A stretch of 64,000 nucleotides of DNA, from positions 62,001 through 126,000 of IMG/VR virus record IMGVR_UViG_3300012931_000759. One strand, written 5' to 3'. The first letter of the stretch is position 1. Every line of letters starts with the position of its first letter. The position numbers were made by a program, and so were the translations under genes. Shown in pieces: positions 176-30,610 of the stretch. The notes below the pieces were generated by a model that ran no database searches, was not told the origin of the DNA, and worked only from the letters and a program-made list of their open reading frames with translations.

Positions 176-246
176 CGCGCGATAGCTCAATTGGTAGAGC
201 AAGCCCTTGACCGGGCGGGATCCGGGTTTCGAGGCTCGGTCGCGCA
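176..246 (+). pseudogene. degenerate tRNA-like element upstream of the Ubl operon
   Basis: GCGCGA/TCGCGC acceptor-like stem, canonical D arm TAGCTCAATTGGTAGAGC, GCCC/GGGC stem with 6-nt loop TTGACC, T-arm-like CCGGG-TTTCGAGG-CTCGG; loop sizes non-canonical. Confidence 0.55.
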
Positions 247-260
247 CTAGGAGAAAGACA

Positions 261-1241
261 ATGGGTTGGCAGGACCTGCTCGCATCGGACGACGACAAGA
301 AGACGCTTCCGTGGACGGGCGGCAGGCAGATCCACGATAGGGAGCGCACCTGGACGATCGAGGGGAGGCTCCCGGACGAGCACGGCTGGTACTCGTTCCG
401 CGTGTCTGGCGGTCGCAAGGCCGAGCTGGAGGGTCCTATGGACCCCGATTCCGATTTCGAGAACGGCCACAAGCTCGCCAAGGGGTACCTGGTGGGAGAC
501 CGGCTGATCCAGGACGACGCGAGGGTCGATCCCGACCCGGTCAGGCTGGTCGACCAGACGACGCCCGTGTTTCTGGTGGAGCCGGGTCTAGATCGGTTCG
601 TGAGGGCGGTGGTAGCTAGGACAAGAGGCGGTCTAGTGTATATCAGACAGGAGTTCCCGCAGGGTTCCGAGGCGGCCGTTCAGATGGCCTACCAGGACCG
701 CAAGGACTCGGTGGTACACGTGGCCGGGGTCACCCCGGCGCTCGACTTGGCGTTCCGCTGGCTCTCCGGCCAGAGGCTGGCGGCCGAGGAGCGCGAACGC
801 GAGATGGCGCGTATCAGGGCCGAGGAGGAGCGCAAGTGGGCGGAAGCTGAGCGATTTAAGCAGGCGATGAAGGATTCTGGAACCGGAGCAGGCAGAAGGG
901 CGCTGGCACAGCGCGATTTCAACACAGCTGCCAAGGCGGCTTTGAAACTCACTGGAGCGGAATTACTGGATGCTAGACCGTCATACAACCGACGTGAAAT
1001 GGTAGTTCAGTATCGGTTTCAGAACAGGCGACTTGAGTGTGTGGTTGATAAAGACACACTACGCGTGGTTGACTCTGGTATCTGTTTGACCGACCACCAC
1101 ACTGGCGTGAAAGGTGATATGCGTTTTACGCTTGAATCGCTTCCCACCGTTGTTGGTCAGGCGATACGGGAAAACAAACTTGTGGTGTACCGGCATGTTG
1201 ACGGAGATCGGGATTATGCCGACGACAATTGGGACGATTGA
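261..1241 (+). CDS. putative E2-like/conjugation-associated protein (central coiled coil, C-terminal DSGICL Cys motif)
   Basis: AGGAG RBS before ATG 261; VVDSGICLTD resembles the E2 G-x-ICL catalytic Cys context; first gene of the JAB-Ubl-E1 cluster; function inferred. Confidence 0.45.
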   Translation: MGWQDLLASDDDKKTLPWTGGRQIHDRERTWTIEGRLPDEHGWYSFRVSGGRKAELEGPMDPDSDFENGHKLAKGYLVGDRLIQDDARVDPDPVRLVDQTTPVFLVEPGLDRFVRAVVARTRGGLVYIRQEFPQGSEAAVQMAYQDRKDSVVHVAGVTPALDLAFRWLSGQRLAAEEREREMARIRAEEERKWAEAERFKQAMKDSGTGAGRRALAQRDFNTAAKAALKLTGAELLDARPSYNRREMVVQYRFQNRRLECVVDKDTLRVVDSGICLTDHHTGVKGDMRFTLESLPTVVGQAIRENKLVVYRHVDGDRDYADDNWDD

Positions 1242-2050
1242 TGTCATTTGTGCGAAAAACTGCCGCCAGAAACAGGCGCACCAATCATATGGTGACGGCG
1301 TTTGGGCGGACTCAATGTATTGCCGCCTGGGTCGAAGAGAGCGGTTTGCCTTATCATACTGTCCGTGTTCGTTTGAAACTAGGCTGGAATACGGAAGATG
1401 CGGTATCATTGCCCGTTGGTGCCAACAGGTTTGGACGCACTGTAATTTTGCCTCTTACTTTTGCGGATCTGGTGTCGGATCCAACAGTATTGAAACAATT
1501 TAGGGCCAGAGAACGAGTACCGCTGTTATGTTCAACTTGTGGGATACCTTTCGATAAGTTGAGAGAAGCGCTGACACCCAGTGATCTGAAGAGAAGCGGC
1601 GTTTTCTGTTCCCGTAGTTGTGCAGGTAAGTTCGGTCGGCAGTCACAACTAGAAACAGTGGACTCGGTCGTTGGTCGACATTGTATTAATTGTGGCATTT
1701 GGAAACCTCTTATTAAATTTGGTGAGAGCCGAGTATGCTATACATGTCGCAACAGCATGCCGAAGGTTCGATATCACGAATATATAAGGCACGATAAACA
1801 TGGTTTTGGTTTAACATTTGATGAATTTATGAAATTCTGGCAACAGCCTTGTTGGTATTGTGGTTGTTCGATTACAACCATTGGCATCGATCGTATAGAT
1901 AATGCCCAAGGCCATGTGATGGGAAACTGTGTTTCCTGCTGTGCTCGATGTAACCGTATGAAAAGTAAATTCTCTCAGGAGGATTTTTTAGATCAATGTC
2001 GTCGCATTGTGGCGCAACATTCAAACACGGAGAATATACGTGATGCTTGA
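1241..2050 (+). CDS. HNH homing endonuclease with Zn-finger motifs
   Basis: CWYCG..IGIDRIDN..GH..GNCVSCCARCNRMK HNH signature; several CxxC; visibly lower GC than neighbours. Confidence 0.85.
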   Translation: MSFVRKTAARNRRTNHMVTAFGRTQCIAAWVEESGLPYHTVRVRLKLGWNTEDAVSLPVGANRFGRTVILPLTFADLVSDPTVLKQFRARERVPLLCSTCGIPFDKLREALTPSDLKRSGVFCSRSCAGKFGRQSQLETVDSVVGRHCINCGIWKPLIKFGESRVCYTCRNSMPKVRYHEYIRHDKHGFGLTFDEFMKFWQQPCWYCGCSITTIGIDRIDNAQGHVMGNCVSCCARCNRMKSKFSQEDFLDQCRRIVAQHSNTENIRDA

Positions 2051-2417
2051 AACGGCATTTGTTTTTACATGTGACGGATCGGTGTTGTATTGGCATTGTC
2101 CAATCGGACGCACTGGCGGTGCTTTGCCAGATTCCCGCAATCTTTGGGACATCCTTTGGGAGAACAGGGAACGGTTGGGTGGTATTGCTCACACACATCC
2201 TTGGTTTGGCGAACCTGTTCCCTCTGGAACAGATGTGACGACATTTGCCGCTGTTGAAGCGGGGCTGGGAAAACGGCTGGTGTGGCCAATCGTGACCATG
2301 AACCAGGTGAAAACATTTATGTGGGTGGGACCCGGCAAGCACGATTATCGGGCGGTTCCTTTCCTCAAAAGCGATGACATCTTTGACCTTCGAAGACTGT
2401 CGGAAAAAGGAGAATGA
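2043..2417 (+). CDS. JAB/MPN+ (Mov34) metalloisopeptidase
   Basis: N-terminal Glu (MLE) and JAMM motif AHTHP..PSGTD (HxH-x7-S-x2-D). Confidence 0.85.
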   Translation: MLETAFVFTCDGSVLYWHCPIGRTGGALPDSRNLWDILWENRERLGGIAHTHPWFGEPVPSGTDVTTFAAVEAGLGKRLVWPIVTMNQVKTFMWVGPGKHDYRAVPFLKSDDIFDLRRLSEKGE

Positions 2418-2739: not shown

Positions 2740-3321
2740 ATGGAAAAGACAGTCGTGATCGTTGGCGTTGGCGCGCTCGGCTCCCATGTGGTGCTTCTGG
2801 CGCGCAACTGGAAAAACCCCTTGCGTATTGCGGATTTCGACAGAATCGAGACCAAAAATATCCAGTCTCAGTTCCATAGCAAGATGGGACTCGGCAAAAA
2901 CAAAGCGCAGGCGCTCCAGCAAGCCCTACAAGGGCTGTTTGGAGTCAAGGTTGAGGCGATCTCGCACAAGTTGGCGGACGATAACGCCGAGAATTTACTC
3001 AAGTCGGCAACTCTTGTGATCGACTGTACGGATAACATTGCCGCTAGGCGCGTTATTCAGAAGTATGTCAGGAAGCACGACATCCCATGTCTCCACGGGG
3101 CGCTTTCGGCCGATGGGGCTTTCGGGCGCGTCGTCTGGGACGAGCACTTCACCGCCGACGAGGAGGGCAAGGAGGGGCAGGCGACCTGCGAGGACGGCGA
3201 GCAGCTCCCGATGTTTGCGCTCGCGGCGGCCCAGGTGGCGGTCGTCGCCCAGCGGTTCCTGAAGGATGGCACCAGGCAGAGTTTCCAAGTGATGCCTGTG
3301 GGCATAGTGAGGCTGGCATGA
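2740..3321 (+). CDS. ThiF/MoeB/E1-family adenylyltransferase
   Basis: VIVGVGALGS, DFDRIETKN, GKNKA, DCTDN..AR motifs; candidate catalytic Cys in ATCED; no CxxC Zn site. Confidence 0.92.
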   Translation: MEKTVVIVGVGALGSHVVLLARNWKNPLRIADFDRIETKNIQSQFHSKMGLGKNKAQALQQALQGLFGVKVEAISHKLADDNAENLLKSATLVIDCTDNIAARRVIQKYVRKHDIPCLHGALSADGAFGRVVWDEHFTADEEGKEGQATCEDGEQLPMFALAAAQVAVVAQRFLKDGTRQSFQVMPVGIVRLA

Positions 3322-3539
3322 AGATCTTCTACGAGACCCTGCGTGAGTGCCTCGATTCATACCATTGGCCGCAGGAACTGTACGACGAGTTGTGCGATTG
3401 GCTGGAGCGGCACCACTACGCGTCGGACAGGGCCGAACTGGTTCTGAGGCTGGTGCGCGGCATCAAGGACGAGGATGGGAAGGCCTTCGGCGCATTGGCC
3501 AAGGAACTCGAGCAGCTTCTCCATGCCCCCGTGGCATGA
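3318..3539 (+). CDS. hypothetical protein
   Basis: ATG overlaps E1 stop (ATGA); 73 aa. Confidence 0.55.
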   Translation: MKIFYETLRECLDSYHWPQELYDELCDWLERHHYASDRAELVLRLVRGIKDEDGKAFGALAKELEQLLHAPVA

Positions 3540-3640: not shown

Positions 3641-3714
3641 GCTCCCATCGTCCAGGGGCAGGACGCCGGTCTTTCAAGCCGGAAACGCGGGTTCAATTCC
3701 CGCTGGGAGCACCA
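3641..3714 (+). tRNA. tRNA-Glu(TTC)
   Basis: complete cloverleaf, loop CT-TTC-AA, encoded CCA. Confidence 0.95.
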
Positions 3715-4315
3715 ACAAACCATGGTCGAGTTCCCAATGGTGGTTGCGGCAGAGTCCGATTAGGTTGTCGGGACTGTTTACTGTAACTACGAGGGTGCTC
3801 ATCGGGAAACTCGTGATCGGTTTGATGTGGCAGCATTCTACATGTGTGGAGTAACCGCAGGTAGCGCATCGTTTGAGTTTCCCAAGACTCTTGGCCACAT
3901 TGCGGGCATGTTCCCCCACAATGGATTTGTAGGAGTTGCGCGAACCGCTTGCTGTTGCGACATCCGCCAAGGTGGCATGACCGATCTTTATGAATCGGTC
4001 TTTGCGGCAGTTGTCACAGAATTTCCTTCTCAACGGAATCGATGTTCCGCAGACGGTACAGGCGTTGGTCCGTTCTTTCTTGGGTTTCTCTGCGTTGATG
4101 TACGAGGATGAACAGGATCGACTACAGAATCTGTCGTTTTTCGTGTCTCGTCCACAATTTAGGCACTTGATGGTTGGTTTGTCGCGTGCTGCTCGGAAAC
4201 ACGCCACCGAACAAAAGAGACGCTTGATGCCGCGTTTCATGTTTTTTGCGTACCAGCATTGGGGTCGCGTGAATTCATGGTGGCAATGGTCGCAGATCAA
4301 GGTAACATCGCTCAC
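3674..4315 (-). CDS. HNH endonuclease with Zn fingers
   Basis: AAGGAG RBS with GTG start; CATCG..ECCHIKPI..NLIGLCRNHH. Confidence 0.85.
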   Translation of the reverse strand: MSDVTLICDHCHHEFTRPQCWYAKNMKRGIKRLFCSVACFRAARDKPTIKCLNCGRDTKNDRFCSRSCSSSYINAEKPKKERTNACTVCGTSIPLRRKFCDNCRKDRFIKIGHATLADVATASGSRNSYKSIVGEHARNVAKSLGKLKRCATCGYSTHVECCHIKPITSFPMSTLVVTVNSPDNLIGLCRNHHWELDHGLLVLPAGIEPAFPA

Positions 4316-4329
4316 GGATTATCTCCTTT

Positions 4330-4405
4330 AGGCCCATAGCTCATCAGGAAGAGCGCCTGTCTTACAAGCAGGAGGTGGTCGGTTCGAGTCCGACTGGGCC
4401 TACCA
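4330..4405 (+). tRNA. tRNA-Val(TAC)
   Basis: complete cloverleaf, CT-TAC-AA loop, encoded CCA. Confidence 0.95.
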
Positions 4406-4467
4406 CTAATGGAAAAAGATTGATAGAAGGGCGGATTCCATTTCCGCTTCGCCCATGGAGGAACAAG

Positions 4468-4659
4468 ATGTTCGGAGAACCGGAGGATGTCGAGGGCGAA
4501 TGCAACGCCCGCCTGTACATAGCCGACAATTTCGGGGACAACCACGCCACGATGCGGTGCCAGCTTTCCAAGGGCCATGATGGATCGCACCAGGAGGTGT
4601 TCCATCGCGACGGCGGCGAGGTGCGCGTGACCTGGGAAGGCGACGAACGCGAAGACTAG
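4468..4659 (+). CDS. hypothetical protein
   Basis: GGAGG RBS, 63 aa, fills the gap between tRNAs. Confidence 0.6.
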   Translation: MFGEPEDVEGECNARLYIADNFGDNHATMRCQLSKGHDGSHQEVFHRDGGEVRVTWEGDERED

Positions 4660-4748
4660 CCCCCGTAGCTCAATGGTGGAGCGACAGCCTTATAAGCTGG
4701 GAGCGTCTGATAAACGCAAGGTTGCAGGTTCGACTCCTGCCGGGGGCA
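4659..4748 (+). tRNA. tRNA with TAT (Ile) anticodon and long variable arm
   Basis: GCCCCCG/CGGGGGC acceptor, CT-TAT-AA loop, V-arm GCGT-CTGATAA-ACGC, T arm GCAGG-TTCGACT-CCTGC. Confidence 0.88.
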
Positions 4749-4764
4749 CGAGAGGCGGAAAAAA

Positions 4765-5487
4765 ATGGGAAGCACCATCTTCAGCCTGTGGATAGGCAGG
4801 AGGCTGTCGCTCCTCGAGCGGCTCTGCGCCAAGTCGTTCCTGGCCAATGGACACGACCTGGAGGTCTACGCGTATGGCCCGATCGAGGGAATGCCGGACG
4901 GCGTCAGCATTCTCCCGGCGGCAGACATCCTGCCGGAGAGCCTGATTGGGAGCTACACCTTGCGCGACGGCGAGTTCATGGGCATGGTGTCGCCGTTCTC
5001 CGATCTGTTCCGGCTCAAGGCTCTCCTGGAGCGCGGCGGCACATGGGTGGACCTGGACATCGTCTGCCTTGCCCCGTTCGACTTCCCCGGAACGCACACG
5101 CTCTCGTCCGAGCGCCAGAAGGACGGCCGCACCAAGGTCACCAACTCGGTGATGAGGACTCCCGCCGGGGACGCCTTCGTGGCGAAGTTCCTGGAACGGG
5201 CGATGCGGATCGATCCGCAAACCATCTGGCACCAGGAGCTTGGTTCGAACCTGATCCCGCCGCTTCTGGAGGCCTTCGCTTTGGAGGGGAGCGTCGAGTC
5301 GCCGAACAGGTTCTGCCCGATTGACTGGTGGGAATGGTCGAGGCCGCTCACCGAGCGGTTCGAGTTGCCGTCCGCGGCGCGCGGCCTTCACCTGTGGAAC
5401 TCCTTCTGGGTCGCCAACGGGGCCGACAAGGATCAGCTGTATCCCGAGACGACCCTGTACGGCACACTCCAGAGGAGGTACCTGTGA
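4765..5487 (+). CDS. GT32-like (DXD) glycosyltransferase
   Basis: SLWIG..LS.LE.LC.KSF, FSDLFRL..L..GGTWVDLD, HLWNS. Confidence 0.85.
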   Translation: MGSTIFSLWIGRRLSLLERLCAKSFLANGHDLEVYAYGPIEGMPDGVSILPAADILPESLIGSYTLRDGEFMGMVSPFSDLFRLKALLERGGTWVDLDIVCLAPFDFPGTHTLSSERQKDGRTKVTNSVMRTPAGDAFVAKFLERAMRIDPQTIWHQELGSNLIPPLLEAFALEGSVESPNRFCPIDWWEWSRPLTERFELPSAARGLHLWNSFWVANGADKDQLYPETTLYGTLQRRYL

Positions 5488-6251
5488 GGCGCATCGTCCT
5501 GTTCCGGTTCCATGAGAGGTTCGATGTCTGCCGTGATCGGATCGCGCTGATCAGGAGGCTGAATCCTGGCGTGCCGGTGTACGGGCTCTACGGCGGCAAG
5601 GAAGGCTTCGAGAACGAGTTGACCGACCTGATCCCGGTGTACGCGCCGTCCCTCTCCAACCAGTTCACCCCTAGCCGGACGAGCTGGATGTGGAAGCACA
5701 ACGATCTCGGGATCAGGGCCTGGTTCGCGATGTTCGGGCGCGACCTGGAGTTCGACATGCTCCATGTGATCGAATGGGACCTGCTGATCCTGGAGCCTCT
5801 GGAGAAGGCCTTCGCGGCCGTGCGCGGGGACGAAGTCGGGTTGACAGGCCTGAGGCCGCTTTCGGCCGCTCCTCCGAGCTGGCCGTGGATGAGGACCGAG
5901 CCCCCTGTCAGCGAATGGAAAGGCCTGCTGGCCGCCGTGAGGGCCGAGTTCGGGTACAGCCAGACCCCGCTCGCCTGCCAAGGGCCGGGGATGTGCTTTC
6001 CGAAGGCGTTCCTGGAGCGGTATACGGACGCTCATGTGCTCCAGCTCTGCCACGAGGAGTTGCGACTCCCGCTGTACGCGCAATGTTTCGGATTCAGAGT
6101 GGTGGACACCGGGATCACCAGGGATTGGGTGACTCCGTTCTTCAACTGCCAGAAGCGCGGAGTCCATCGCCGGACGGTGGACGGGGAACTGGCCAAGCCG
6201 GATGGGTGCCGCGTGTTCCATCCGTTTTTCGAGGTGTTTGGGGGACCATGA
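5484..6251 (+). CDS. putative glycosyltransferase-like protein
   Basis: GTG overlapping upstream stop; IEWDLL (ExD-like) and C-terminal FHP; adjacent to GT32. Confidence 0.5.
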   Translation: MRRIVLFRFHERFDVCRDRIALIRRLNPGVPVYGLYGGKEGFENELTDLIPVYAPSLSNQFTPSRTSWMWKHNDLGIRAWFAMFGRDLEFDMLHVIEWDLLILEPLEKAFAAVRGDEVGLTGLRPLSAAPPSWPWMRTEPPVSEWKGLLAAVRAEFGYSQTPLACQGPGMCFPKAFLERYTDAHVLQLCHEELRLPLYAQCFGFRVVDTGITRDWVTPFFNCQKRGVHRRTVDGELAKPDGCRVFHPFFEVFGGP

Positions 6252-6769
6252 ACATCTTCGCTGTCGATCCCGATCCCATTGTCTCGGCAAAGTCGCTGGT
6301 CGACAGGCACGTCGTCAAGATGATCCTGGAGTCGGTCCAGCTGATGTGCGTCGCGCACGCGGTCCATGGGCCGGTTCCCGAAGGCGTTTGGGACAGCCTC
6401 GGATGGCGGCACCACCCGTGCGCCAAGTGGACTGCGGCTTCTCTGTCCAACTACCGATGGCTGCTCGCGCACGCGGAAGGCCTGTGCGCCGAGTACCGGC
6501 ACCGGTACGGCAGGACGCACAAGCTGGAATCGGACGGGATGCTGGAAAGGCTGGCCGCAGCACCGCCGATATCGGATATCGGCCCGACGCCGTTCGCCGA
6601 GGCCACCGGAGACATCCACGATGGCGAGCCGGTGGCGACCTACAGGCGGTACTACATCGAGCACAAGAGTCACCTGATGGTCTGGACGCGGCGAGAGCCC
6701 CCGGACTGGATCAGGGCGGCCATGGCCGTCTCCAGGCAGGGGGACAGGTGGCTGGCCAAGCGGAGATGA
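6248..6769 (+). CDS. pyrimidine-dimer DNA glycosylase/endonuclease V-like family protein
   Basis: MNIF..D.DP..A..HVVKMILES.Q, HHPC.KW..S.NYRWL, EY..RYG..HK. Confidence 0.75.
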   Translation: MNIFAVDPDPIVSAKSLVDRHVVKMILESVQLMCVAHAVHGPVPEGVWDSLGWRHHPCAKWTAASLSNYRWLLAHAEGLCAEYRHRYGRTHKLESDGMLERLAAAPPISDIGPTPFAEATGDIHDGEPVATYRRYYIEHKSHLMVWTRREPPDWIRAAMAVSRQGDRWLAKRR

Positions 6770-6770
6770 C

Positions 6771-7172
6771 ATGGACAAGGAACTCGACAAGCAGCTGTGC
6801 CTGGAATGCCCGAACCTGTACGCCGACCGGAACCTCTCCATCATGCAGACGTGTATGGCGTGGGGGTTCGACTGCATGGACGGGTGGTTCCCCATCATCC
6901 GCGACCTGTCGCTGAAGCTGGAGGCGATCATCGCCGCGATGCCGGAAGGTGAGCGCGGGGGATACAAAGCCGCCCAGGTCAAGGAGAAGTTCGGCACGCT
7001 GCGGTTCTACATGACCGCCGAGACCGACGAGATGGAGCGGCTCATCGGCGAGGCCGAGAGCGCTAGCGCCAGGACCTGCGAGTACTGCGGGCAGCCGGGA
7101 AAGCTGCGGACCAAGGGCTGGTTGTTCACCCTGTGCGACAAGTGTGACGAGGAGCGGCCATGGCGGAAGTGA
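6771..7172 (+). CDS. conserved phage protein (QVKEKFGTLRFY family)
   Basis: GWF..I, QVKEKFGTLRFY, TCEYCG..TLCDKC. Confidence 0.7.
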   Translation: MDKELDKQLCLECPNLYADRNLSIMQTCMAWGFDCMDGWFPIIRDLSLKLEAIIAAMPEGERGGYKAAQVKEKFGTLRFYMTAETDEMERLIGEAESASARTCEYCGQPGKLRTKGWLFTLCDKCDEERPWRK

Positions 7173-8041
7173 TGGACATCGTCCTCGACATGGAGACCGG
7201 CGATCCCGACGACTTCATGACCCTGCTGCTCCTGTTGGGGCACCCGAGGTCGAACCTGAAGGCCGTCACGGTGACGCCCGGCACGAGGGAGCAGATCGGC
7301 CTGGTCAGGTGGGCATGCGCCCAACTCGCGCCGGGCCGGTACATCCCGGTCGGCGCGTTCGACCCCACGCGGGACAAAAAGTGCGTCTCCTCCTGGCACT
7401 ACGAGGTCTACGGGCAGATCCCACCCAAGGATCCGGACGACCGGGGCGGTTTCGTCCTCAAGCGGTGCTGCGACGAGAACACGACGCTCGTCACCGGCGC
7501 GCCTCTGCGGAACATCGGCGTGGCGATGGACCTGGACTTCAGGGTCGGCCGATGGGTAGCGCAGGGCGGATTCGCGGGCGAGGGCGTGGTGCCGCCGGAG
7601 CGGCAGCTGGAGAAGTTCCGGGGCATGGTCGTCTGTCCGACCTACAACCTGAACGGCGACCCGAAGGCGGTCCTGCGAGCCCTGGAGTATGGTGGGATAG
7701 GACACAGGCGGTTCGTCTCCAAGAACGTCTGCCACGGAGTGGTGGCCGACCGCGCGCTGGTCGACAGGGTCGGGGCGGCGAAGACTCCGCATCTGGAACT
7801 GATCCACAGGGGCATGGAGGCCTACCTGTCCAAGGGACCGGTCGGCAAGAAGGCCGGAAAGAAGCTCCACGATCCGCTGGCGGCCTGCTGCGCGCTGACA
7901 CCGGAGATAGGGGAATGGGCCGAGGTCAAGCTGTTCCGGGAGAAGGGCCAGTGGGGCAGCGCTTTGAAGCCAGGCACGAACACCTGGATTATCACAGGTT
8001 TTGACAAAGAACGGTTCGTTTCAGTCCTAACTGAAGTTTGA
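7160..8041 (+). CDS. inosine-uridine nucleoside hydrolase family protein
   Basis: DMETGDPDD, TGAPLRN, YNLNGD, LHDPLA. Confidence 0.85.
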   Translation: MAEVMDIVLDMETGDPDDFMTLLLLLGHPRSNLKAVTVTPGTREQIGLVRWACAQLAPGRYIPVGAFDPTRDKKCVSSWHYEVYGQIPPKDPDDRGGFVLKRCCDENTTLVTGAPLRNIGVAMDLDFRVGRWVAQGGFAGEGVVPPERQLEKFRGMVVCPTYNLNGDPKAVLRALEYGGIGHRRFVSKNVCHGVVADRALVDRVGAAKTPHLELIHRGMEAYLSKGPVGKKAGKKLHDPLAACCALTPEIGEWAEVKLFREKGQWGSALKPGTNTWIITGFDKERFVSVLTEV

Positions 8042-8116
8042 GGTTTCAACACTTGGGAATCTATCATTATTCTGACATTAGTACTAGGAACATCTTAATA
8101 GTATTAGGAGGAATGT

Positions 8117-8803
8117 ATGAGACGGTTCACAGACAAGGAACTCAGCCAAGCGGTTAAGGACAGCCTATTCCTATTCCAGGTGATCCATAAGTTGGATCTG
8201 AACCCGAGCAAAACAACCTACTCGCGCATCAGGCACCTGATTCTCAAACTCGGTCTGGACACTTCGCATTGGACAGACGCCAGGACGATTCGGATCCTGC
8301 CTGACGAGCAAATTTTCGTCAAAGGATGCCGTGTTCCGCCTTCAACCGTGCGAAGGCGTTATGCGCAATTGGGACAGCCGTACCAATGTGCCGAATGCGG
8401 AATTTTCGAATGGCGCGGAGTTCAGTTGATTCTGGAATTGGATCACAAGAATGGAGATCGCAAGGACAACAGACTAGACAATCTGCGATGGCTGTGTCCA
8501 AATTGCCATAGCCTGACTTCGACATATTGCGGCAAAAATAAACCCCTACTGAAAAAGATCACTCATTGTGTCGAATGTGGAACGGCGGTTTCTAGGTATG
8601 CGACCAGGTGTCGACGATGCGCTGGCAATCTGATCGGCGCCACACGGATGAAGATCGAATGGCCTTCTGTTGACGATCTGATTCTGATGCTACAGAGAGA
8701 TTCATTGGCTACTGTGGCCGCACAGTTGGGCGTTTCATCTGCCGCTGTGAGAAAACATTTACTACATCGTCGCGGAGGGAAGAAAAATCCCAATGTGGCG
8801 TAA
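8117..8803 (+). CDS. HNH endonuclease with C-terminal HTH
   Basis: CAECG..LELDHKNGD..DNRLDNLRWLCPNCH. Confidence 0.9.
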   Translation: MRRFTDKELSQAVKDSLFLFQVIHKLDLNPSKTTYSRIRHLILKLGLDTSHWTDARTIRILPDEQIFVKGCRVPPSTVRRRYAQLGQPYQCAECGIFEWRGVQLILELDHKNGDRKDNRLDNLRWLCPNCHSLTSTYCGKNKPLLKKITHCVECGTAVSRYATRCRRCAGNLIGATRMKIEWPSVDDLILMLQRDSLATVAAQLGVSSAAVRKHLLHRRGGKKNPNVA

Positions 8804-8807
8804 GCAT

Positions 8808-8880
8808 GCCCCCGTAGTCTACTGGATGAGGCGCTCGGCTACGGACCGAGTTTAAGCAGGTTCGATTCCTGCCGGGGGTA
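8808..8880 (+). tRNA. tRNA-Arg(ACG)
   Basis: cloverleaf, CTCGG-CT-ACG-GA-CCGAG. Confidence 0.9.
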
Positions 8881-8884
8881 CAAT

Positions 8885-9007
8885 TCAGGGATAGTTCAAG
8901 GGTAGAACGGACGGCTGTGGGCGTTCCTGCGGCCAGGGTTGTGGTGGGTCGGCACCGCCGATGCCCCTAACCGTCAAATGGGGGTTCGAATCCCTCTCCC
9001 TGAGCCA
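8885..9007 (+). tRNA. tRNA-Asn(GTT) interrupted by a 49-nt insert (8919-8967)
   Basis: TCAGGGA/TCCCTGA acceptor, G73, CCA; removing 8919-8967 restores GACGG-CTGTTAA-CCGTC. Confidence 0.85.
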
Positions 9008-9020
9008 GAAAGGAGTCGGC

Positions 9021-9404
9021 ATGACACCAGGATCCGTTGTCGAACTCGAGCTGGACCAGCCTCGGAACCAATGGCTTGCCAGGCCGGGCGCCCGCGCCGT
9101 GATCGTCGATGGCAGGAAGCGGTTTCCGGATCTCTACGACCGGCTGGAGGAGTACCTTCGCAATTTCGGGCAGCCCGATGAGGACATCAAAGAGTTCATC
9201 TGGGTGGTGTGGGAACGGGCGGACAAGCGGTGGAACGGCCAGGCCGACGGGGCGTACACGAGGTACAGGTTCAGGGAGGTCCCGAAGGGACCTGAACCCA
9301 AGAACAACGATGGACGGACGGTCTGCTTCTGGTGCAAGGGATCGACGGAGACCAAGCAGGGCTTCACCTCGTCCTACAACATCTGCCCGAAGTGCGGGAA
9401 GTGA
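9021..9404 (+). CDS. hypothetical protein with C-terminal Zn ribbon
   Basis: AAGGAG RBS; CFWC..CPKC. Confidence 0.65.
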   Translation: MTPGSVVELELDQPRNQWLARPGARAVIVDGRKRFPDLYDRLEEYLRNFGQPDEDIKEFIWVVWERADKRWNGQADGAYTRYRFREVPKGPEPKNNDGRTVCFWCKGSTETKQGFTSSYNICPKCGK

Positions 9405-9407
9405 CGG

Positions 9408-9683
9408 ATGAGGAAGGTTGAGGACTCCAGATTCTACGAGATGTTCCAGGAGATCGACCGGTTCGTCGCCGAGCTCCGCAAAAGGTATGGCGGCGGGCAG
9501 GACTCGATCGCCGACTCGTTGATGGCCCTGTGCCTGATGGTCGCGAAGGTGCTCTCGCACGAGGGGCTTCCGGCCAGCGTGGCCGAGGAGTACATTGCGA
9601 GCTTCACGCGGTTCATCGACTCGGTTTCCGGCAAGGAGGGCGCGAGTCCGCTGGACAAGCTGATCGGGAAGGGAAGCAACTGA
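9408..9683 (+). CDS. hypothetical protein
   Basis: packed + strand ORF. Confidence 0.55.
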   Translation: MRKVEDSRFYEMFQEIDRFVAELRKRYGGGQDSIADSLMALCLMVAKVLSHEGLPASVAEEYIASFTRFIDSVSGKEGASPLDKLIGKGSN

Positions 9684-9684
9684 C

Positions 9685-9763
9685 GCGAGGGTGGTGTAAT
9701 GGCAGCCACGCCACGCCAGGTCGAGAGCCTGGACAGGTGCCGATTCGAATCCGGCCGGGAGCA
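9685..9763 (+). pseudogene. chimeric tRNA pseudogene (GAG anticodon arm)
   Basis: D arm, anticodon arm and T arm present, but acceptor strands GCGAGGG and CGGGAGC do not pair; tandem ACGCC at the junction. Confidence 0.6.
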
Positions 9764-9777
9764 CAAGGAGAAGTCGC

Positions 9778-10110
9778 ATGGCCGAGCAGGAGAGGCATTT
9801 CGTCCAGCTGATGGAGCTGTTCGCGAAGCAAGGCATTCCCGCCATCCCCATGGATCAGGTCAGGCAGACTGGGGACAGTTGGAACTTCGAGGTTTTCGGC
9901 GAGCGCGGATCAATCATCACCTACCGGCTGTGGGGTCTTGGGATCGTGAATGTCTGGATGGGCAAGGCCGATTTGGACTCCGGCGGCCTGGCGATGCAGG
10001 GCCAGGTCCCGAACGGGGTCGAGCACATCCTCAGGCTCCACAAGCGTTTTGCGACCTCCGGCCGCCGCAAAGTGCTTCGCAGGGCTGAGCGCGCTCCGTA
10101 CGGATTGTAG
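9778..10110 (+). CDS. hypothetical protein
   Basis: AAGGAG RBS. Confidence 0.6.
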   Translation: MAEQERHFVQLMELFAKQGIPAIPMDQVRQTGDSWNFEVFGERGSIITYRLWGLGIVNVWMGKADLDSGGLAMQGQVPNGVEHILRLHKRFATSGRRKVLRRAERAPYGL

Positions 10111-10115
10111 TTTGC

Positions 10116-10190
10116 GCCCCCGTAGCGCAAATGGCAGGAGGCACCGGTTTTAAAAACCGGACAGTGCCGGTTCAAATCCGGCCGGGGGCA
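10116..10190 (+). tRNA. tRNA-Leu(TAA) with short variable region
   Basis: GCCCCCG/CGGGGGC acceptor, CCGGT-TT-TAA-AA-ACCGG, V region ACAGT only. Confidence 0.85.
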
Positions 10191-10203
10191 TGAGGAGACG
10201 GCG

Positions 10204-10674
10204 ATGATCAGCGCGAACTGGAAAAACGGGCAGGGCCACGAGCTGGTCCTATGTTACGAGGAGAAGACGACGGGCGGCGGAATCTGCAAAGGCCAAGAGC
10301 ACCAGCTCTGGCCGGACTATGAGCCGCTCTACTACGAGGTGGCGCTCTTGTCCCTTCACAGGCCGGATTTGAAGCAGCTTTCGTGGAACTGTGAAACGGT
10401 CTACGCCCAGTTCAATCCGACCAAGGCCAAGCGCGCACATCTAGTGGTTGTCAAATATCAAGACGGCGACACCTTCGGGACATCCCATGGGAATGTCTAT
10501 ATCGAGGGAGCATATCGGACAAAAAAGGAAGCCGATAGGATTGCCAAGAGCATCGAGGACGATATCTACAAGGGAGGCTACAAGGCCTGGAGTAGATATT
10601 TCAAGAGCCTAGAAGAGTGTCGAGGTTGTCTCCTTCGACATAGAAAAGTGAGGTTGTCGGCTGTAGAGGAATAG
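10204..10674 (+). CDS. hypothetical protein
   Basis: AGGAG RBS; 3' end possibly frameshifted. Confidence 0.6.
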   Translation: MISANWKNGQGHELVLCYEEKTTGGGICKGQEHQLWPDYEPLYYEVALLSLHRPDLKQLSWNCETVYAQFNPTKAKRAHLVVVKYQDGDTFGTSHGNVYIEGAYRTKKEADRIAKSIEDDIYKGGYKAWSRYFKSLEECRGCLLRHRKVRLSAVEE

Positions 10675-10727
10675 CTCCCTAGCGCCCTAGTACAGCGTCC
10701 ACAGCGGTTTGATTCCGCCAGCCGACT
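10656..10727 (+). ncRNA. tRNA-like RNA with 8-bp acceptor and 4-bp T stem, aberrant anticodon arm
   Basis: GTCGGCTG/CAGCCGAC; GCGG-TTTGATT-CCGC; GAG-GAATAG-CTC D-like arm. Confidence 0.5.
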
Positions 10728-10739
10728 CAGGAGGTCAAG

Positions 10740-11057
10740 ATGAACGATTGGTTCGCGGAGGCGCTCGAGGCATGCGCATTAGGCAACCAGGACAAGGCGC
10801 TTGACATCGTCTACGACATCGTGGATAATATGTTGTTGTCGGCAAGATTTGACGACGCCGACCAGGCATTGCGAGAGATTGACGTGCCCAACACGCCAAT
10901 AGTGATCCTGGTTGGATTGCTGACGATCACCTTGTTGGCCAATGATCGCCTGCCGTCGCGCTCAGCGTTTTTCGAGGCTGTCCGGGCCGAATGTATTGCG
11001 CGCGGACGGACGGGTACCGACCAGTTGCTTAAAGGGCTTGACATGGAAATGCGATGA
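10740..11057 (+). CDS. hypothetical protein
   Basis: GGAGG RBS. Confidence 0.6.
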   Translation: MNDWFAEALEACALGNQDKALDIVYDIVDNMLLSARFDDADQALREIDVPNTPIVILVGLLTITLLANDRLPSRSAFFEAVRAECIARGRTGTDQLLKGLDMEMR

Positions 11058-11665
11058 TCGAGGCTCTTTCGATACCTGGATGGATGAGTTGCGACGAGTG
11101 CCAGGAGTTGTACGGCCTGGCTATGTCCGCCAACGGACCAATCCTGGAGATCGGGCATTTTCTAGGCCGATCCACTGCCTGTATCTGCGCGGGCATCCGG
11201 GACTCTGGGCGCGGAAACTCTTTTCGGTCGTACGATCTCGGATTCCGTACGGACGCAGAGTTTCGGGAGTTTTACGACAGGATCCACCAGCGGCCAACGC
11301 CGGTGCCCGACCTTCACCAGCAGGTGTTCCAGAGCGGCCGCATCTCAACAGACATCGCAAGGGAGAACTTGGAACGATATGGTCTGGTAGGGTTCGTAGA
11401 ACTTGTTAGCGGGAATTTCATCGAATTGGACAGGGACCGGTACGCCTTCGTGTTCTGTGATGCCGTCCATGAGACAAACGAGATCCGGCACAACCTGCCA
11501 CATATCATGGAGCGTAGCGCGTCGTCAGCTGTCTGGGCATTCCATGACATGTACGGCATAAATGCGACGCTAGTCGAAGAGTTGTCGGGGGCGCGGCTGG
11601 TTGAGCGGGTGGGAAGTTTAGGCATTTTTAACTACATTGGACAGCACTCTGACGAGGCCTTTTGA
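11054..11665 (+). CDS. class I SAM-dependent methyltransferase (Methyltransf_24-like)
   Basis: IPGWMS..E, ILEIGHFLGRST, FVFCDAVH, AFHD. Confidence 0.85.
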   Translation: MIEALSIPGWMSCDECQELYGLAMSANGPILEIGHFLGRSTACICAGIRDSGRGNSFRSYDLGFRTDAEFREFYDRIHQRPTPVPDLHQQVFQSGRISTDIARENLERYGLVGFVELVSGNFIELDRDRYAFVFCDAVHETNEIRHNLPHIMERSASSAVWAFHDMYGINATLVEELSGARLVERVGSLGIFNYIGQHSDEAF

Positions 11666-11709
11666 CTGTTAATCTGGTGAGGTGGTTCGATTCCCGTTGG
11701 GTTACACGT

Positions 11710-11774
11710 GGTTCCATCGTTCAGCCTGGCCTAGGATATCGGCTTGTTACGCCGAAGACAGGTCCATGGGACCG
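11710..11774 (+). pseudogene. tRNA-Asp-like remnant (GTT anticodon, T arm deleted)
   Basis: GGTTCCA/TGGGACC acceptor, Asp-type D arm, TCGGC-TTGTTAC-GCCGA, no TTCGA loop. Confidence 0.6.
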
Positions 11775-11955
11775 CAAGAAATGTACAATGGGGATTGTTG
11801 TCCAATACCACAAGGAGGATAATGATGCTGGAGTTTTTCGCCAATCTATGGCAAAGTAATACTGGCAACAAGGTCATGCTGATTGTCGGCGCCCTGATTT
11901 TCCTAGTGGCCATTGTCGGGGTTGTCTACGGCATCTGTTCTTGAACAATGATCGT

Positions 11956-11998
11956 TGCGGGATAACCAATAGGTAAGGCAACGGACTTCATAATCCGG
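11956..11998 (+). pseudogene. 5' part of a tRNA-Met(CAT)-like gene
   Basis: TGCGGGA..D-like arm..CGGA-CTTCATAA-TCCG; no T arm or 3' acceptor strand. Confidence 0.45.
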
Positions 11999-12016
11999 AA
12001 ACAATGGTTTTATAAT

Positions 12017-12106
12017 GGAAGGCCCGTCAGGCATTGGTGCCCTGTGCGCGCCCGCTAAGCGCGTGGGGATTAACCTCCCCTAGCAGTTCGATTCTGCTGC
12101 CTTCCG
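12017..12106 (+). tRNA. tRNA-Ser(GCT), non-canonical C8/C33
   Basis: GGAAGGC/GCCTTCC with G73, CC-GCT-AA loop, V-arm GGGGA/TCCCC, T arm. Confidence 0.8.
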
Positions 12107-12221
12107 ATGGATTTTGGTGGGTACATTTTGTGTTGGTTTTAGGTGTGCGGCTCGAATTTGCGTGGGTCTGAAATATGGTTCCGTCTATTCAACTTATACA
12201 CCCACCACCAAGGAGAAAAAC

Positions 12222-12407
12222 ATGAGTGGCGTATTCATCCACAAGAAGACCGGCAACAAGTATGTGGTCATTGGCGAGTGTCTGAATTGTACGAACGCCC
12301 AGGATGGCCAGGAGATGGTGGTCTATTCTAGGGGCGGAAAAGTGTTCGTCCGGGAGAAATCGGAATTCCTGAAGAAGTTTGTCCCGGAGAAGGTCGATGG
12401 GGAATAG
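12222..12407 (+). CDS. DUF1653-like small protein
   Basis: H.K.GNKY.V..NCTN..MVVY..VFVR..EF..KF. Confidence 0.7.
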   Translation: MSGVFIHKKTGNKYVVIGECLNCTNAQDGQEMVVYSRGGKVFVREKSEFLKKFVPEKVDGE

Positions 12408-12410
12408 TCG

Positions 12411-12623
12411 ATGTGGATCAACAGGAAGGAATTCAGGGAGCTGGCCGCAAGGGTCGACGAGCTTGTCGCCACGGCGACTGAAACAGGCAGTTGGGCTCTT
12501 GTAAACCCCGGCCAGGACAACGAGGCCAATAGGTTCTACAAGCTTTTGTGGGCCCACATGGATCTACGGATAGCGTTGTCGGCTCTGGCCGGCAAGCTGG
12601 AAGCTATAGCTACGAGGTGGTAG
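12411..12623 (+). CDS. hypothetical protein
   Basis: packed + strand ORF. Confidence 0.5.
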   Translation: MWINRKEFRELAARVDELVATATETGSWALVNPGQDNEANRFYKLLWAHMDLRIALSALAGKLEAIATRW

Positions 12624-12962
12624 ATGACCGAAGAACAGAGGGAACTCAAGATTTCGGAACTCGACAGCACGCTGTTCAAGCCGTACTGGGGGATCATCAT
12701 CGCTATTTCGAAAACGGTGATTCGCAGGGTACAGGCCCTGCTCGGGATGCCCGAGATGGAGGCAGTTTTATTTGTAGCTAGGCGGTACGCGGAGGTGGAT
12801 CTGCCGGAATCCATCGACGGCATGACGGATGACCTGTATGTGTCCAGAAGCATTGATTTCGAGTCCCAGATGGTGCTGCTCAGCATTACCTCGATAACGG
12901 AGAGGAAGGGCATGTATGCCATCACGCCGGGCTTTAAATATCCGCAGAAACAAGTGTATTGA
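12624..12962 (+). CDS. hypothetical protein
   Basis: GAGGT RBS, packed. Confidence 0.55.
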   Translation: MTEEQRELKISELDSTLFKPYWGIIIAISKTVIRRVQALLGMPEMEAVLFVARRYAEVDLPESIDGMTDDLYVSRSIDFESQMVLLSITSITERKGMYAITPGFKYPQKQVY

Positions 12963-13037
12963 CATGGACGCCTTTGCCATCGCATGGGCGATGGCTAAAG
13001 AGGATCTCAAGATCCTGCTGAGGGTGATGGCCGAAAG

Positions 13038-13445
13038 ATGCCGAGAAAGACCAGCGAGGAAATCAGGAAAAACTACCGGAAAAGGTTGAACTTGCCGGAG
13101 TTTCCGCCGGATGGCGAGCTGGTCAGGTTCATGACGAAATCCGGCACCCTCATTGCCGTCGGCTACGAGCGCGTCGTTATTGGCGACCGTGGGCCGTACA
13201 TCGAGTTCGCGCCTGGCCGCATCATGAAGGTTGGCTGGAACATTCCGGCCCACCAAAAGTGGCGCATCAAAGGCCAATGCTACTATGTCGAAGGGCGCAC
13301 TTTGGACGAGGCCAACGTCAAGATGTACTACCAGAAGGCGACGGTTGGATACGCTGACTACAGGGTTGGGATGTGGTACATCTCGCCGTTCGACCTGACG
13401 ACCGACCAATGGCCGATGCTGGTCGCCCCGCTGGAGGGGCGGTAA
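13038..13445 (+). CDS. conserved hypothetical protein
   Basis: GYERVVIGDRGPYIEF..YYQKATVGYADY..GMWYISP looks like a conserved family. Confidence 0.65.
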   Translation: MPRKTSEEIRKNYRKRLNLPEFPPDGELVRFMTKSGTLIAVGYERVVIGDRGPYIEFAPGRIMKVGWNIPAHQKWRIKGQCYYVEGRTLDEANVKMYYQKATVGYADYRVGMWYISPFDLTTDQWPMLVAPLEGR

Positions 13446-13563
13446 TGTCATGTATTTCGACGACGACTGCCCCAGCCACGACTACAATGAGTGCGACGAC
13501 AACGGGAAATGCGCCCTACAGGCGAAGGCGGCCAGGTTCGTCAAGTAGCTTGACCTGCTCTGG

Positions 13564-13742
13564 GCGGATGCTGAACTCGAGGACATTCCGCTGTTTGAGT
13601 CGCTGGTGCTTAGGGAAATCCTATGGACGTTCGCGAAGCGGTGTCCGCATTTCAAGGGGAAAGACTAAGGGTATGGCCGTCCTACATTGGCGCCAGCGTG
13701 TGGAATAACGTCCCTGGGGATTCGAGTCCCTCCATCCGTACC
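13564..13742 (+). ncRNA. 179-nt tRNA-Leu-like RNA with expanded D and anticodon arms
   Basis: GCGGATG/CATCCGT then ACC; T loop TTCGAGT; 8-bp GCTGGTGC/GCGCCAGC stem enclosing TTAG and several hairpins. Confidence 0.6.
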
Positions 13743-13752
13743 GAGGTGAACT

Positions 13753-14058
13753 ATGGGCTGGGCAAACAACGCCATCAAGGAGCTCTTGGCTGGCAACACC
13801 GTCCAGATCCGCCCCAAGGGCAATTCTATGAGGGGGCGGATCGAGAGCGGCCAGCTAGTGACCATCGCGCCATGCGTTCCCGGCGACATCGAGATTGGCG
13901 ATGTAGTGCTTGCCAAGGTCAAGGGGCGCGTGTTTCTACATCTGGTCGGGGCTGTCGCGGACGCCAAGCGGAAACGCATGTTCTTGATCAAGAACAACCG
14001 GGGCCGGACCAATGGATGGACCGGCACGGTCTACGGCAAAGTCGTTAAGGTTGAGTAG
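13753..14058 (+). CDS. S24/S26 peptidase-like protein
   Basis: KGNSM..I.SG..V..GDVVL..LHLV. Confidence 0.75.
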   Translation: MGWANNAIKELLAGNTVQIRPKGNSMRGRIESGQLVTIAPCVPGDIEIGDVVLAKVKGRVFLHLVGAVADAKRKRMFLIKNNRGRTNGWTGTVYGKVVKVE

Positions 14059-14070
14059 AAAGGGAAAGCT

Positions 14071-14662
14071 ATGGACTCCGCTATTTACGGGAAAAGCAAG
14101 GCCAAGACCGGTATCACGCCAGCGATCATCCTAGTCAACCCTAAATTTCCCCACAATGTAGGCGCGGCCCTCCGGGCAGCATCCTGTTTCGGGGTCGGCC
14201 AAGTGTGGTACACGGGTGATCGGGTGGCAATGGAGTTGGAGAAGAAACGTCGGTTGCCGCGAGAAGAACGTATGCGTGGTTACAAAGATGTGGCTTTGCG
14301 CCAGTTCGACTATCCTTTCGAAGTTTTCGAAAACGATGTCACGCCTGTGGCCGTAGAATTGCGACCGAATTCGGAATTGCTTCCACAGTTTGTCCATCCT
14401 GAAAAAGCCGTGTATGTGTTCGGGTAGCATCCCGCAGGTTTGCCTGCGCCATTGCCACCGCTTTATCGTTATCCCGACGCACCACTGTGTCAACCTGTCG
14501 GCGGCCGTGTACCTGATCTTATACGACAGACTGGTGAAGCGCCAGGCTGCCGGGTTGGAGCCGGTCCTGCCGATGGACGATGTCCTGAGGGAGCAGCGCG
14601 GACCAGTCGTCGGCGGAGGCAAGTTGTACGGCCACGGCGGCGAGTCCGACGTGGAGATCTGA
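14071..14662 (+). pseudogene. SPOUT (TrmH/TrmL-like) RNA methyltransferase, frameshifted
   Basis: NPKFPHNVGAALRA; VYVFG* then GSIP..CVNLSAAVYLILYDR in another frame; the GPE motif is deleted. Confidence 0.85.
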
Positions 14663-14673
14663 AAGGGAAAACG

Positions 14674-15086
14674 ATGCGACTCACAGCCATCCTGTTCGTC
14701 ATGCTGCTGGCGTCCTGCGCGGCGCCATCGCCAACACGCCGCCTCCGGCGGCTGCCGAGCAGCCCAAGCCGAAGCCGTCGTGCGTGGAGCAGGTGCGCGA
14801 CATCCTGAAGCACGAGGCGGACATCCGGTTCGGGGACAGCATCGCCGACACGGTGGCGGAGCAGAACGATCTTGGGAACTGGCGCATCGTGGTGACGGAC
14901 GATTGTCTGGCCCTTCGTTCCACGGATGGGCATATCCTGATGAAGGACGGCATTTTGTACGATGCTTTTGGAGGATCGCCCGTGTTGACCAGCCGCAGGG
15001 CCAAGGAGCGGCTTGCCAGGGTTTTCGCCTGCCGCGTGGCGCATCTGCAGAGCATGGCGGCCGGAACCCCGGATTGCTCGAAATGA
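14674..15086 (+). pseudogene. probable frameshifted lipoprotein
   Basis: signal peptide with lipobox LLASC from ATG 14674; globular part continues in another frame (14784-15086). Confidence 0.45.
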
Positions 15087-15202
15087 GGTCGCGATGAGGA
15101 TTTTGCTGGTTCTGTTCGCCCTGCTGGCCGGTTGTGTCGGACAGGGCGTGAAGTCGGTTCCGAAAGATGCCCGGCCTGCGGCCGGATGCCCGAGATAGGG
15201 GC

Positions 15203-15231
15203 TTGACAAGCGGTTGCGCCTCGGGTAGATT
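15203..15231 (+). promoter_or_regulatory. sigma70-type promoter
   Basis: TTGACA-17 nt-TAGATT upstream of the 15283 gene. Confidence 0.65.
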
Positions 15232-15282
15232 GTTACTGGATCGGCAACGGTCCGCCCAAAACGGCAACCGCCGGAGGAGAAC

Positions 15283-16071: not shown

Positions 16072-16141
16072 CAGACGTTCCCGCCGTGTTTTTTCATCCC
16101 ATTGTTTTGCGTCCCGTATTCGGGACGCCGGGACGGGGTTT

Positions 16142-16215
16142 CGGGCAGAGGGCTTGATGGAAAGCCGCTGGTCCTGGGCATCAGAGTTGTGCGGGTTCGA
16201 CTCCCGCCTGCCCGA
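16142..16215 (+). tRNA. tRNA-Pro(TGG), non-canonical A8/C33
   Basis: CGGGCAG/CTGCCCG with A73, CTGGT-CC-TGG-GC-ATCAG, perfect T arm. Confidence 0.8.
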
Positions 16216-16291
16216 CCGATTTTCTTGGCATTTTTGTGGGCGTGTCCGACAACGTGGTACGTAAACACCTGCGAGTAAAGGAATCACAGCA

Positions 16292-30397: not shown

Positions 30398-30610
30398 ATG
30401 ATCTTTGAGGTCGAAGTGTACATGATTGTCGGAAACGGCAACTGTGAGACGATCGTCGTGGACATGGAAGGCAAGGATGAGGTTGACATCAAGGCGCGGA
30501 TACTTGCGGAATTGAACTCCAAGGAAAACTATGTCGCGATAGGGACTGGCGTGTTCCAGAGGGAAAATGTGCGCGGAACCTGCGTCAACCGGGAGAAAGG
30601 GGGAAAATGA
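30398..30610 (+). CDS. hypothetical protein
   Basis: GGAGG RBS. Confidence 0.55.
   Translation: MIFEVEVYMIVGNGNCETIVVDMEGKDEVDIKARILAELNSKENYVAIGTGVFQRENVRGTCVNREKGGK

Follow-up and report, generated by a model that had tools for sequence, protein, structure and literature searches.

To our knowledge, the conjugation of ubiquitin-like proteins (Ubls) in prokaryotes has so far been described either as a bacterial weapon against phages (Cap2 of the cyclic oligonucleotide-based antiphage signaling system, CBASS, and Bil) or as sulfur chemistry. The described systems closest to the one analyzed here are CBASS Cap2/Cap3 and the operons combining a Ubl (BilA), a conjugating enzyme (E2; BilB), a JAB peptidase (BilC) and an activating enzyme (E1; BilD), which were classified as type 6d by Iyer, Burroughs and Aravind (2006; PMC1779556) and are now called Bil. 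The Bil E1 has tandem adenylation domains and a mobile cysteine domain, and the Bil E2 is of the UBC type (PMC11601596). Here we analyze a module of huge phages in which a VWA-domain protein, a protein of an unnamed family that we call X, a JAB peptidase, a Ubl and an E1 are encoded in this order on one strand. The gene for X lies near the 5' end of the stretch of DNA that was analyzed (the window), 64,000 nucleotides corresponding to bases 62001-126000 of the 340,392-bp IMG/VR virus record IMGVR_UViG_3300012931_000759. An original prediction made from the sequence alone had proposed that X is a divergent E2, perhaps of a new class. Our favored reading, held with somewhat less than even confidence, is that in a minimal phage Ubl system X is a partner of the E1 that depends on its cysteine and functions like an E2 without being of the UBC type. 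A literature search found no published description of a VWA-X-JAB-Ubl-E1 module.

What is new in the phage module is its single-domain E1, a cysteine protein that is not of the UBC type, an added VWA protein with a metal ion-dependent adhesion site (MIDAS), and its carriage by phages together with the existence of a Ubl-less core in cyanobacteria. As in Bil, a JAB peptidase and an E1-like enzyme accompany a standalone Ubl that has a C-terminal glycine, and the cysteine protein is a separate polypeptide; however, BilB is a recognizable UBC-fold E2 whereas X is not, the phage E1 is a single adenylation domain of 193 residues, the VWA/MIDAS protein is an addition, and the genes are encoded by phages rather than in bacterial defense islands. 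Likeness to CBASS Cap2/Cap3 is found in the E1s, those of both phages and cyanobacteria matching the E1 part of the PADLOC Cap2 'E1-E2' models (1e-16 to 1e-18), in the order of a cysteine-domain protein followed by E1, which is that of the Cap2 E2-E1 fusion, and in the Ubl-less cyanobacterial version, which recalls the way in which CBASS conjugates an enzyme's own C terminus; for X and the VWA protein, PADLOC has no model. The SAMP/UbaA/HvJAMM1, TtuB/TtuC/TtuD, ThiS/ThiF and MoaD/MoeB systems likewise combine a single-domain E1 carrying a crossover-loop cysteine, a small beta-grasp protein with a C-terminal glycine, and a JAB peptidase that processes or deconjugates, but they have no obligatory extra cysteine protein and no VWA partner, and their Ubls end in GG where the phage Ubl has FG followed by a pro-tail. 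By description, the module also resembles Bub (6E / DUF6527), a bacterial pathway akin to ubiquitination but diverged from it, in which components are non-canonical and the Ubl has to be processed (PMC11601596).

The gene order is conserved across 76 IMG/VR loci that carry an X homolog: JAB is present in all 76, the VWA protein in 74, the Ubl in 73 and the E1 in 72. In compact loci the module genes abut or overlap. In the window the stop codon of JAB overlaps the start of the Ubl gene as ATGA. A search seeded with the Ubl protein retrieved the same contigs as the search with X. The HNH gene that separates X from JAB in the window is missing from most related loci, where JAB directly follows X, and is a local insertion outside the module. 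In related phages, HNH genes occupy other positions within the same module, and for this reason the two HNH/endonuclease VII-type genes of the window look like homing-endonuclease insertions. Besides this genome, just the closest relative (1 of the 76 loci) has the small DUF167/YggU gene between the VWA and X genes, and the 73-residue open reading frame (ORF) that overlaps the E1 stop codon was not found at the same position in L003 or L004.

Since the Ubl terminus, the JAMM motif, the E1 site and the gene order are all conserved, the sequences describe what appears to be a complete minimal Ubl system with two extra proteins, X and the VWA protein. The 89-residue protein is predicted to be a ubiquitin-like precursor: across 36 homologs an invariant C-terminal ...PKTPFG is followed by 0-19 variable residues, with two homologs ending exactly at the glycine, and its Atlas model (pLDDT, predicted local distance difference test, 0.82) resembles the beta-grasp domains of FERM_N/RA, DUF348, PI3K_rbd and PB1 at template modeling (TM) scores of 0.50-0.56. 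In the most divergent phage locus (L079), the Ubl carries an acidic tail of ~50 residues after ...PKVPFG. The complete JAMM motif of the JAB peptidase (E...HxH...S..D) is invariant in 29 homologs. In 31 homologs of the E1, the GxGxxG and DxxDN motifs and Cys150 of 'ATCEDG' are invariant and the nucleotide site is intact; we take Cys150 to be at the crossover-loop cysteine position of MoeB/ThiF. The VWA protein has an intact MIDAS motif (DxSxS...T...D). We rejected its identification as a Ro60/TROVE homolog, as it has no Pfam TROVE match and its profile retrieved only VWA domains from the PDB. A divergent phage (L081) encodes a second VWA-domain protein of 829 residues directly upstream of the module VWA gene (L081:4616-7105).

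The reading frame of X is a real conserved gene, far beyond chance. A GGAG Shine-Dalgarno sequence lies 5-8 nucleotides 5' of its ATG at 261, and we preferred this start over an alternative TTG start at 207 because the longer frame would cross a tRNA-like element. This element was not called by ARAGORN; its D-arm looks canonical and its anticodon and T regions look degenerate. X matched nothing in Pfam, PHROGs, PADLOC, NCBIfam or PDB sequences, the last also when searched with a profile. A word search found at least 1408 homologs, none of them named and many on contigs of 130-540 kb, and a profile search against 1.84 billion representatives (E<=0.001) found 481 clusters at 50% identity, nearly all of 290-335 residues and of the same architecture as X. 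Among GenBank phages, a homolog occurs solely in Virus Rctr197k (KX853510.1, L006; positions 9001-9939, 45% identity). In that record the homolog is unannotated, a 150-residue ORF on the opposite strand being annotated instead, and the VWA gene upstream is entered only as a misc_feature. In L079 (9911-10795) the X frame ends directly after ...DSGICLRAEYHSEE, and similarity to X extends beyond the end of the frame to about position 10894; the early stop is probably a frameshift or assembly error.

The original prediction had pointed to the cysteine of a GICL motif as a candidate catalytic residue and to its conservation as a check, and it has proved to be the single invariant cysteine of the family. 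X contains two cysteines, C260 and C275, in the peptides LECVV (from residue 258) and DSGICL (from residue 271). G273 and C275 are invariant across 63 members with identity down to 33%, and C275 is also invariant in alignments A1, A2 and A9 (the last mixed), in the divergent phage L081 and in the cyanobacterial X sequences. Ser or Ala, on the other hand, takes the place of C260 in P0130, P0140, P0203, P0254, L081 and every cyanobacterial X. Among the 63 members, the histidines downstream of C275 (H278/H279) vary and a 'TLESLP' stretch past a variable loop is nearly invariant. When phage, L081 and bacterial sequences are taken together, only W43, G273, C275, D286 and L291 are invariant; of these, G273, C275 and D286 appear to be the only functional-looking residues, and all three fall in the loop predicted to follow a four-strand meander. 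A zinc site formed by C260, C275, H279 and H312 was rejected, since of these residues C275 alone does not vary. We likewise rejected, as a feature of the family, the idea that X offers its acidic C-terminal tail to the MIDAS of the VWA protein as a ligand: most divergent members lack such a tail and end in ...LVVxRH.

We modeled full-length X with AlphaFold2 on a 34-sequence alignment (pLDDT 84) and its C-terminal domain alone from 63 sequences (pLDDT 84, predicted TM score 0.75). Translation and models bear out the three parts that had been proposed: the N-terminal region is rich in beta structure (strands span residues 13-130), a charged helix follows, and both cysteines of the protein belong to the C-terminal domain. 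The C-terminal domain is modeled as helix, helix, four-strand meander, an extended loop with Cys275, and helix (about residues 209-303), with Cys275 placed 4 residues past strand 4 and 19 before the next helix, in a loop of lower confidence. The proposed coiled-coil stalk, which contains AAEEREREMARIRAEEERK at residue 174, holds up in the models as one long helix (45% charged), but not as a feature of the family: cyanobacterial X lacks it and has a basic, variable linker in its place, and L081 has PVV repeats there, which makes the helix a lineage-specific linker rather than a defining element. Neither the full nor the C-terminal model gave anything significant in Foldseek/VIA searches against PDB and BFVD or in the ESM Atlas shape search, and an ESM Atlas look-alike search with the C-terminal part returned no usable feature match, its structural rows being DsbC-like with TM<=0.51. 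The alpha-beta4 core superposes on DsbC/DsbG/PepSY-like units with a root-mean-square deviation (rmsd) of 1.8-2.4 A over about 50 residues. An identification as a DsbC/DsbG N-terminal dimerization domain is not supported, since X does not combine a structural match that stands well above background with a fused thioredoxin domain. A complex prediction of E1, Ubl(1-88) and the X C-terminal domain (scores 0.01, 0.70 and 0.02) gave no verdict and was not used either way.

The original prediction left out the operon context of X (JAB, Ubl and E1), which is the strongest evidence on this protein, and part of this context is also found outside phages. A plasmid search with the E1 found, on Dolichospermum plasmid pAfl69, an X homolog directly upstream of a 212-residue ThiF protein; this 'hypothetical protein' aligns to X with an hhalign probability of 95.8% (E 6.9e-9, 236 aligned columns) and retains VVSSGICL...DRDFDLQSL. 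The genome collection contains at least 104 such Nostocales loci, of which 80 were kept for counts. X adjoins E1 in 79 of these 80 loci, the two genes overlapping in L167 and L198, and in 70 a 515-residue VWA protein is encoded upstream on the strand of X; it shares 422 homologous columns with the phage VWA protein, including the N-terminal helical part (probability 99.1%). Genes within these operons often overlap, whereas the outer flanks of the VWA-X-E1 loci vary. More broadly, X was found in 31 of 301 sampled cyanobacterial genomes, with E1 following it in four of the six loci inspected for the best matches. Neither Ubl nor JAB is present in the Nostocales operons, and a search of three whole Nostoc genomes found no homolog of either, an empty answer that is weak evidence. 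Because the operon also occurs in Nostocales without JAB and Ubl, the pairing of X with E1 is not merely a matter of phage colinearity. The cyanobacterial VWA-X-E1 core also suggests that X and E1 were partners before the phage module arose.

Two further genes were observed beside the cyanobacterial operon. A basic 241-residue protein (p241) is encoded upstream in 60 of the 80 loci (e.g. L167:3777-4502, Nostoc linckia NIES-25); in five phage loci, weak homologs are encoded 8-10 kb downstream of X, and none was detected in the window. We considered p241 as a JAB and rejected this (hhalign probability 0.2%). A ribosomal protein L7/L12-like paralog also precedes the operon in 19 of the 80 loci (L167:4719-5099 in the same strain).

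If X is a cysteine-dependent partner of the E1, the module could work as follows. The JAB peptidase would trim the tail of the Ubl, exposing Gly88, which the E1 would adenylate, possibly passing the Ubl to its own Cys150; Cys275 of X would attack the activated carboxylate to form a Ubl thioester, from which the Ubl would be transferred to a target lysine. The target might be chosen by the N-terminal beta domain of X, by the MIDAS-containing VWA protein or by both, and the charged helix would be a mere spacer between the two domains of X. The E3-like substrate selection that the original prediction assigned to the N-terminal domain is speculative. The order of X followed by E1, with the cysteine domain at the C terminus of X, mirrors the E2-E1 order of known fusions (PMC1779556). 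A search of the 340-kb phage genome for UQ_con, Prok-E2_A and Prok-E2_B, which found none of the three elsewhere, also speaks for this reading. The term 'E2-like' as applied to X rests on the invariant cysteine and the gene context, not on homology. A wider claim, which we consider doubtful, is that X represents a structurally new, non-UBC class of Ubl-conjugating enzymes, such that huge phages would encode a complete tagging system (Ubl, E1, cysteine carrier, JAB and a VWA specificity factor) modifying host or phage proteins in the course of infection, with a Ubl-less VWA-X-E1 ancestor or offshoot in cyanobacteria; to call X a categorically new class of E2 would take biochemical work and an experimentally determined structure.

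Several observations weigh against an E2-like role. No E2-type Pfam family matched X or any of the 63 members at E<=1, the C-terminal profile aligned to a Prok-E2_B domain from a cyanobacterium with an hhalign probability of 0.3%, and X has no sequence or significant structural similarity to E2, UEV or RWD domains. Its core superposes on UBCs with an rmsd of 4.6-4.8 A, worse than on the DsbC/DsbG/PepSY-like units. All phage module loci belong to a single colinear lineage, and phage synteny alone is therefore weak proof of a functional link. As the cyanobacterial operons lack Ubl and JAB, the conserved VWA-X-E1 core works without this Ubl. Finally, an E2 is not required, because triads of E1, Ubl and JAB can conjugate without one, as in SAMP/UbaA, Urm1/Uba4 and TtuB/C/D.

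The last of these points leads to the rival that survives best, though we consider it unlikely: an E2-independent system of the SAMP/UbaA/HvJAMM1, Urm1 or TtuB/TtuC/TtuD type, in which X, perhaps jointly with the VWA protein, would serve as a scaffold, an adaptor, a module for oligomerization or the principal substrate, and Cys275 would be structural or regulatory. The short phage E1 does keep the invariant crossover-loop cysteine, as E2-independent E1-like enzymes do, and both the absence of E2 homology in X and the cyanobacterial operons without Ubl and JAB fit such a system. However, a purely structural cysteine is rarely the sole invariant residue over a divergence such as that of X, which reaches 33% identity among the aligned members and extends to the bacterial branch detected by hhalign, and the free replacement of neighboring Cys260 argues against C275 belonging to a disulfide or cysteine pair.

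An improbable alternative is a sulfur relay, in which a persulfide on Cys275 would serve to make a thiocarboxylate from the Ubl adenylate bound to the E1, with X acting in trans like the rhodanese domain of MoeZ/Uba4 or like ThiI and feeding the modification of tRNA, DNA or a cofactor. The best NCBIfam matches of the minimal E1 are ThiF and MoeB, a Ubl with a terminal glycine together with a JAB is also the pattern of CysO/Mec and TtuB/TtuD, the module lies within a tRNA gene array, and the window contains a class-V aminotransferase that is possibly a cysteine desulfurase. This aminotransferase, however, lies 57 kb from the module. Of five other large relatives only one has it, for which reason we rejected a phage cysteine desulfurase as a module partner. 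The 340-kb genome has no match to the PP-loop thiolase family PF01171, a possible consumer of the thiocarboxylate, which was matched in all 14 control genomes (ThiG and MoaE, among others, were not searched); the X domain resembles neither rhodanese nor TusA; the terminus of the Ubl is FG rather than the GG usual for sulfur carriers; and the role of the VWA protein is left unexplained.

We give little credence to the idea that X is a true but extremely diverged UBC-fold E2, its C-terminal domain descending from the E2 superfamily with loss of the HPN motif and the C-terminal helices. The secondary-structure order of this domain (helix, four strands, Cys loop, helix) does match the UBC core, and the E2-like cysteine context that had been claimed for X stands in so far as Cys275 is placed topologically like an E2 cysteine, whereas no similarity to E2s in sequence, and no significant one in structure, was found. 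The statement that X lacks an upstream HPN is correct, there being no conserved His or Asn upstream of C275; since the classical His is missing from several bacterial E2-like families too (PMC1779556), this absence alone does not exclude E2 membership. Comparison of the predicted structure with UBC folds, the check that had been suggested, yielded no significant structural neighbor for the C-terminal domain. On the available profiles and models, X does not look recognizably like a classical E2, and its membership of the E2 superfamily is not supported.

Least probable of all is an RNA-directed role, in which the N-terminal tandem barrels of X would bind RNA and VWA-X-E1 would act on tRNA or another RNA, for example by TcdA-like adenylation, with Ubl and JAB as phage add-ons: for the full X model, Foldseek ranks highest the tandem cold-shock/OB modules found in RNase II, RNase R, Dis3L2 and Unr, tRNA genes flank the module here and in Rctr197k, and the E1 has a weak TcdA match (1.3e-7), but the cold-shock/OB matches are not significant (E 0.02-0.1), the cyanobacterial operons are not beside tRNA arrays in the loci inspected, and the invariant cysteine is left without explanation.

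The features of the module and of its surroundings are collected in the table below. Among the tRNA genes that follow the module, the tRNA-Ile(TAT) call is 91 nucleotides long. The resolvase-like and TnpB genes farther downstream, together with the 81-aa TNB-domain fragment, represent an IS605/IS607-type element within the phage genome.

Table. Features of the X module and its surroundings. Coordinates refer to the window, except those prefixed L005, which refer to locus L005.
Feature	Coordinates	Strand	Remarks
tRNA-His (ATG anticodon)	L005:60-134		Upstream of VWA gene
VWA protein, 661 aa	L005:1411-3396		C-terminal VWA domain; just upstream of window
DUF167/YggU-family protein, 78 aa	L005:3397-3633		Between VWA and X; Pfam 1.7e-20
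tRNA-like element	176-247	+	Directly 5' of X start; Rfam tRNA 28.8 bits against gathering score of 29
Protein X gene	261-1241	+	326-aa translation; unnamed family with invariant Cys275
X N-terminal beta-rich domain, residues 1-158	261-734	+	Two small beta-barrels in model
X long charged helix, residues 159-207	735-881	+	Single helix in both models
X C-terminal alpha/beta domain, residues 205-318	873-1214	+	AlphaFold2 model of domain alone
Cys260 codon TGT	1038-1040	+	Dispensable; Ser/Ala in some homologs
Cys275 codon TGT	1083-1085	+	G-[IV]-C-L motif; candidate active-site nucleophile
HNH / endonuclease VII-like gene	1229-2050	+	PHROG endonuclease VII and HNH matches; between X and JAB
JAB/JAMM metallopeptidase	2043-2417	+	124 aa from Met13 of 136-aa ORF; Prok-JAB and PADLOC JAB matches
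Ubiquitin-like beta-grasp protein, 89 aa	2414-2683	+	Putative precursor with C-terminal tail
Minimal E1-like adenylyltransferase, ThiF family, 193 aa	2740-3321	+	Pfam ThiF 5.6e-27; NCBIfam ThiF/MoeB/UbaA
73-aa ORF	3318-3539	+	ATG overlaps E1 stop (ATGA); no family match
Seven dispersed tRNA genes	3641-16217		After module; Glu-TTC, Val-TAC, Ile-TAT, Arg-ACG, Leu-TAA, Ser-GCT, Pro-TGG
Second HNH/endonuclease VII-type gene	3674-4315	-	Between tRNA-Glu and tRNA-Val
Pyrimidine-dimer glycosylase-like gene	5690-6769	+	
C5 cytosine DNA methylase	30567-31754	+	First of two
ADP-ribosylglycohydrolase	35123-36223	+	
Endonuclease VII	39036-40076	+	
C5 cytosine DNA methylase	44309-45496	+	Second of two
DNA gyrase B gene, 1365 aa	47146-51243	+	Interrupted by intein with LAGLIDADG homing-endonuclease domain
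Resolvase-like gene, then TnpB/Cas12f-like protein	52951-54608	+	OrfB_IS605 and TNB domain
1384-aa protein	54676-58830	+	TRAM domain sole match
Class-V aminotransferase, cysteine-desulfurase-like	60061-61182	+	3.6e-71; 1.2 kb after TRAM protein
81-aa TNB-domain fragment	61375-61620	+	

A large and environmentally widespread lineage of huge phages, in which contigs of 130-620 kb carry more than 1400 homologs of X, has its own Ubl, E1 and JAB and, where an E2 would be expected, a protein that no profile or fold library recognizes. The cyanobacterial VWA-X-E1 core offers a second, genetically tractable entry point to this protein. If Cys275 of X does carry the Ubl, the module would represent a convergent solution to the E2 step and an instance of protein tagging on the side of the phage.

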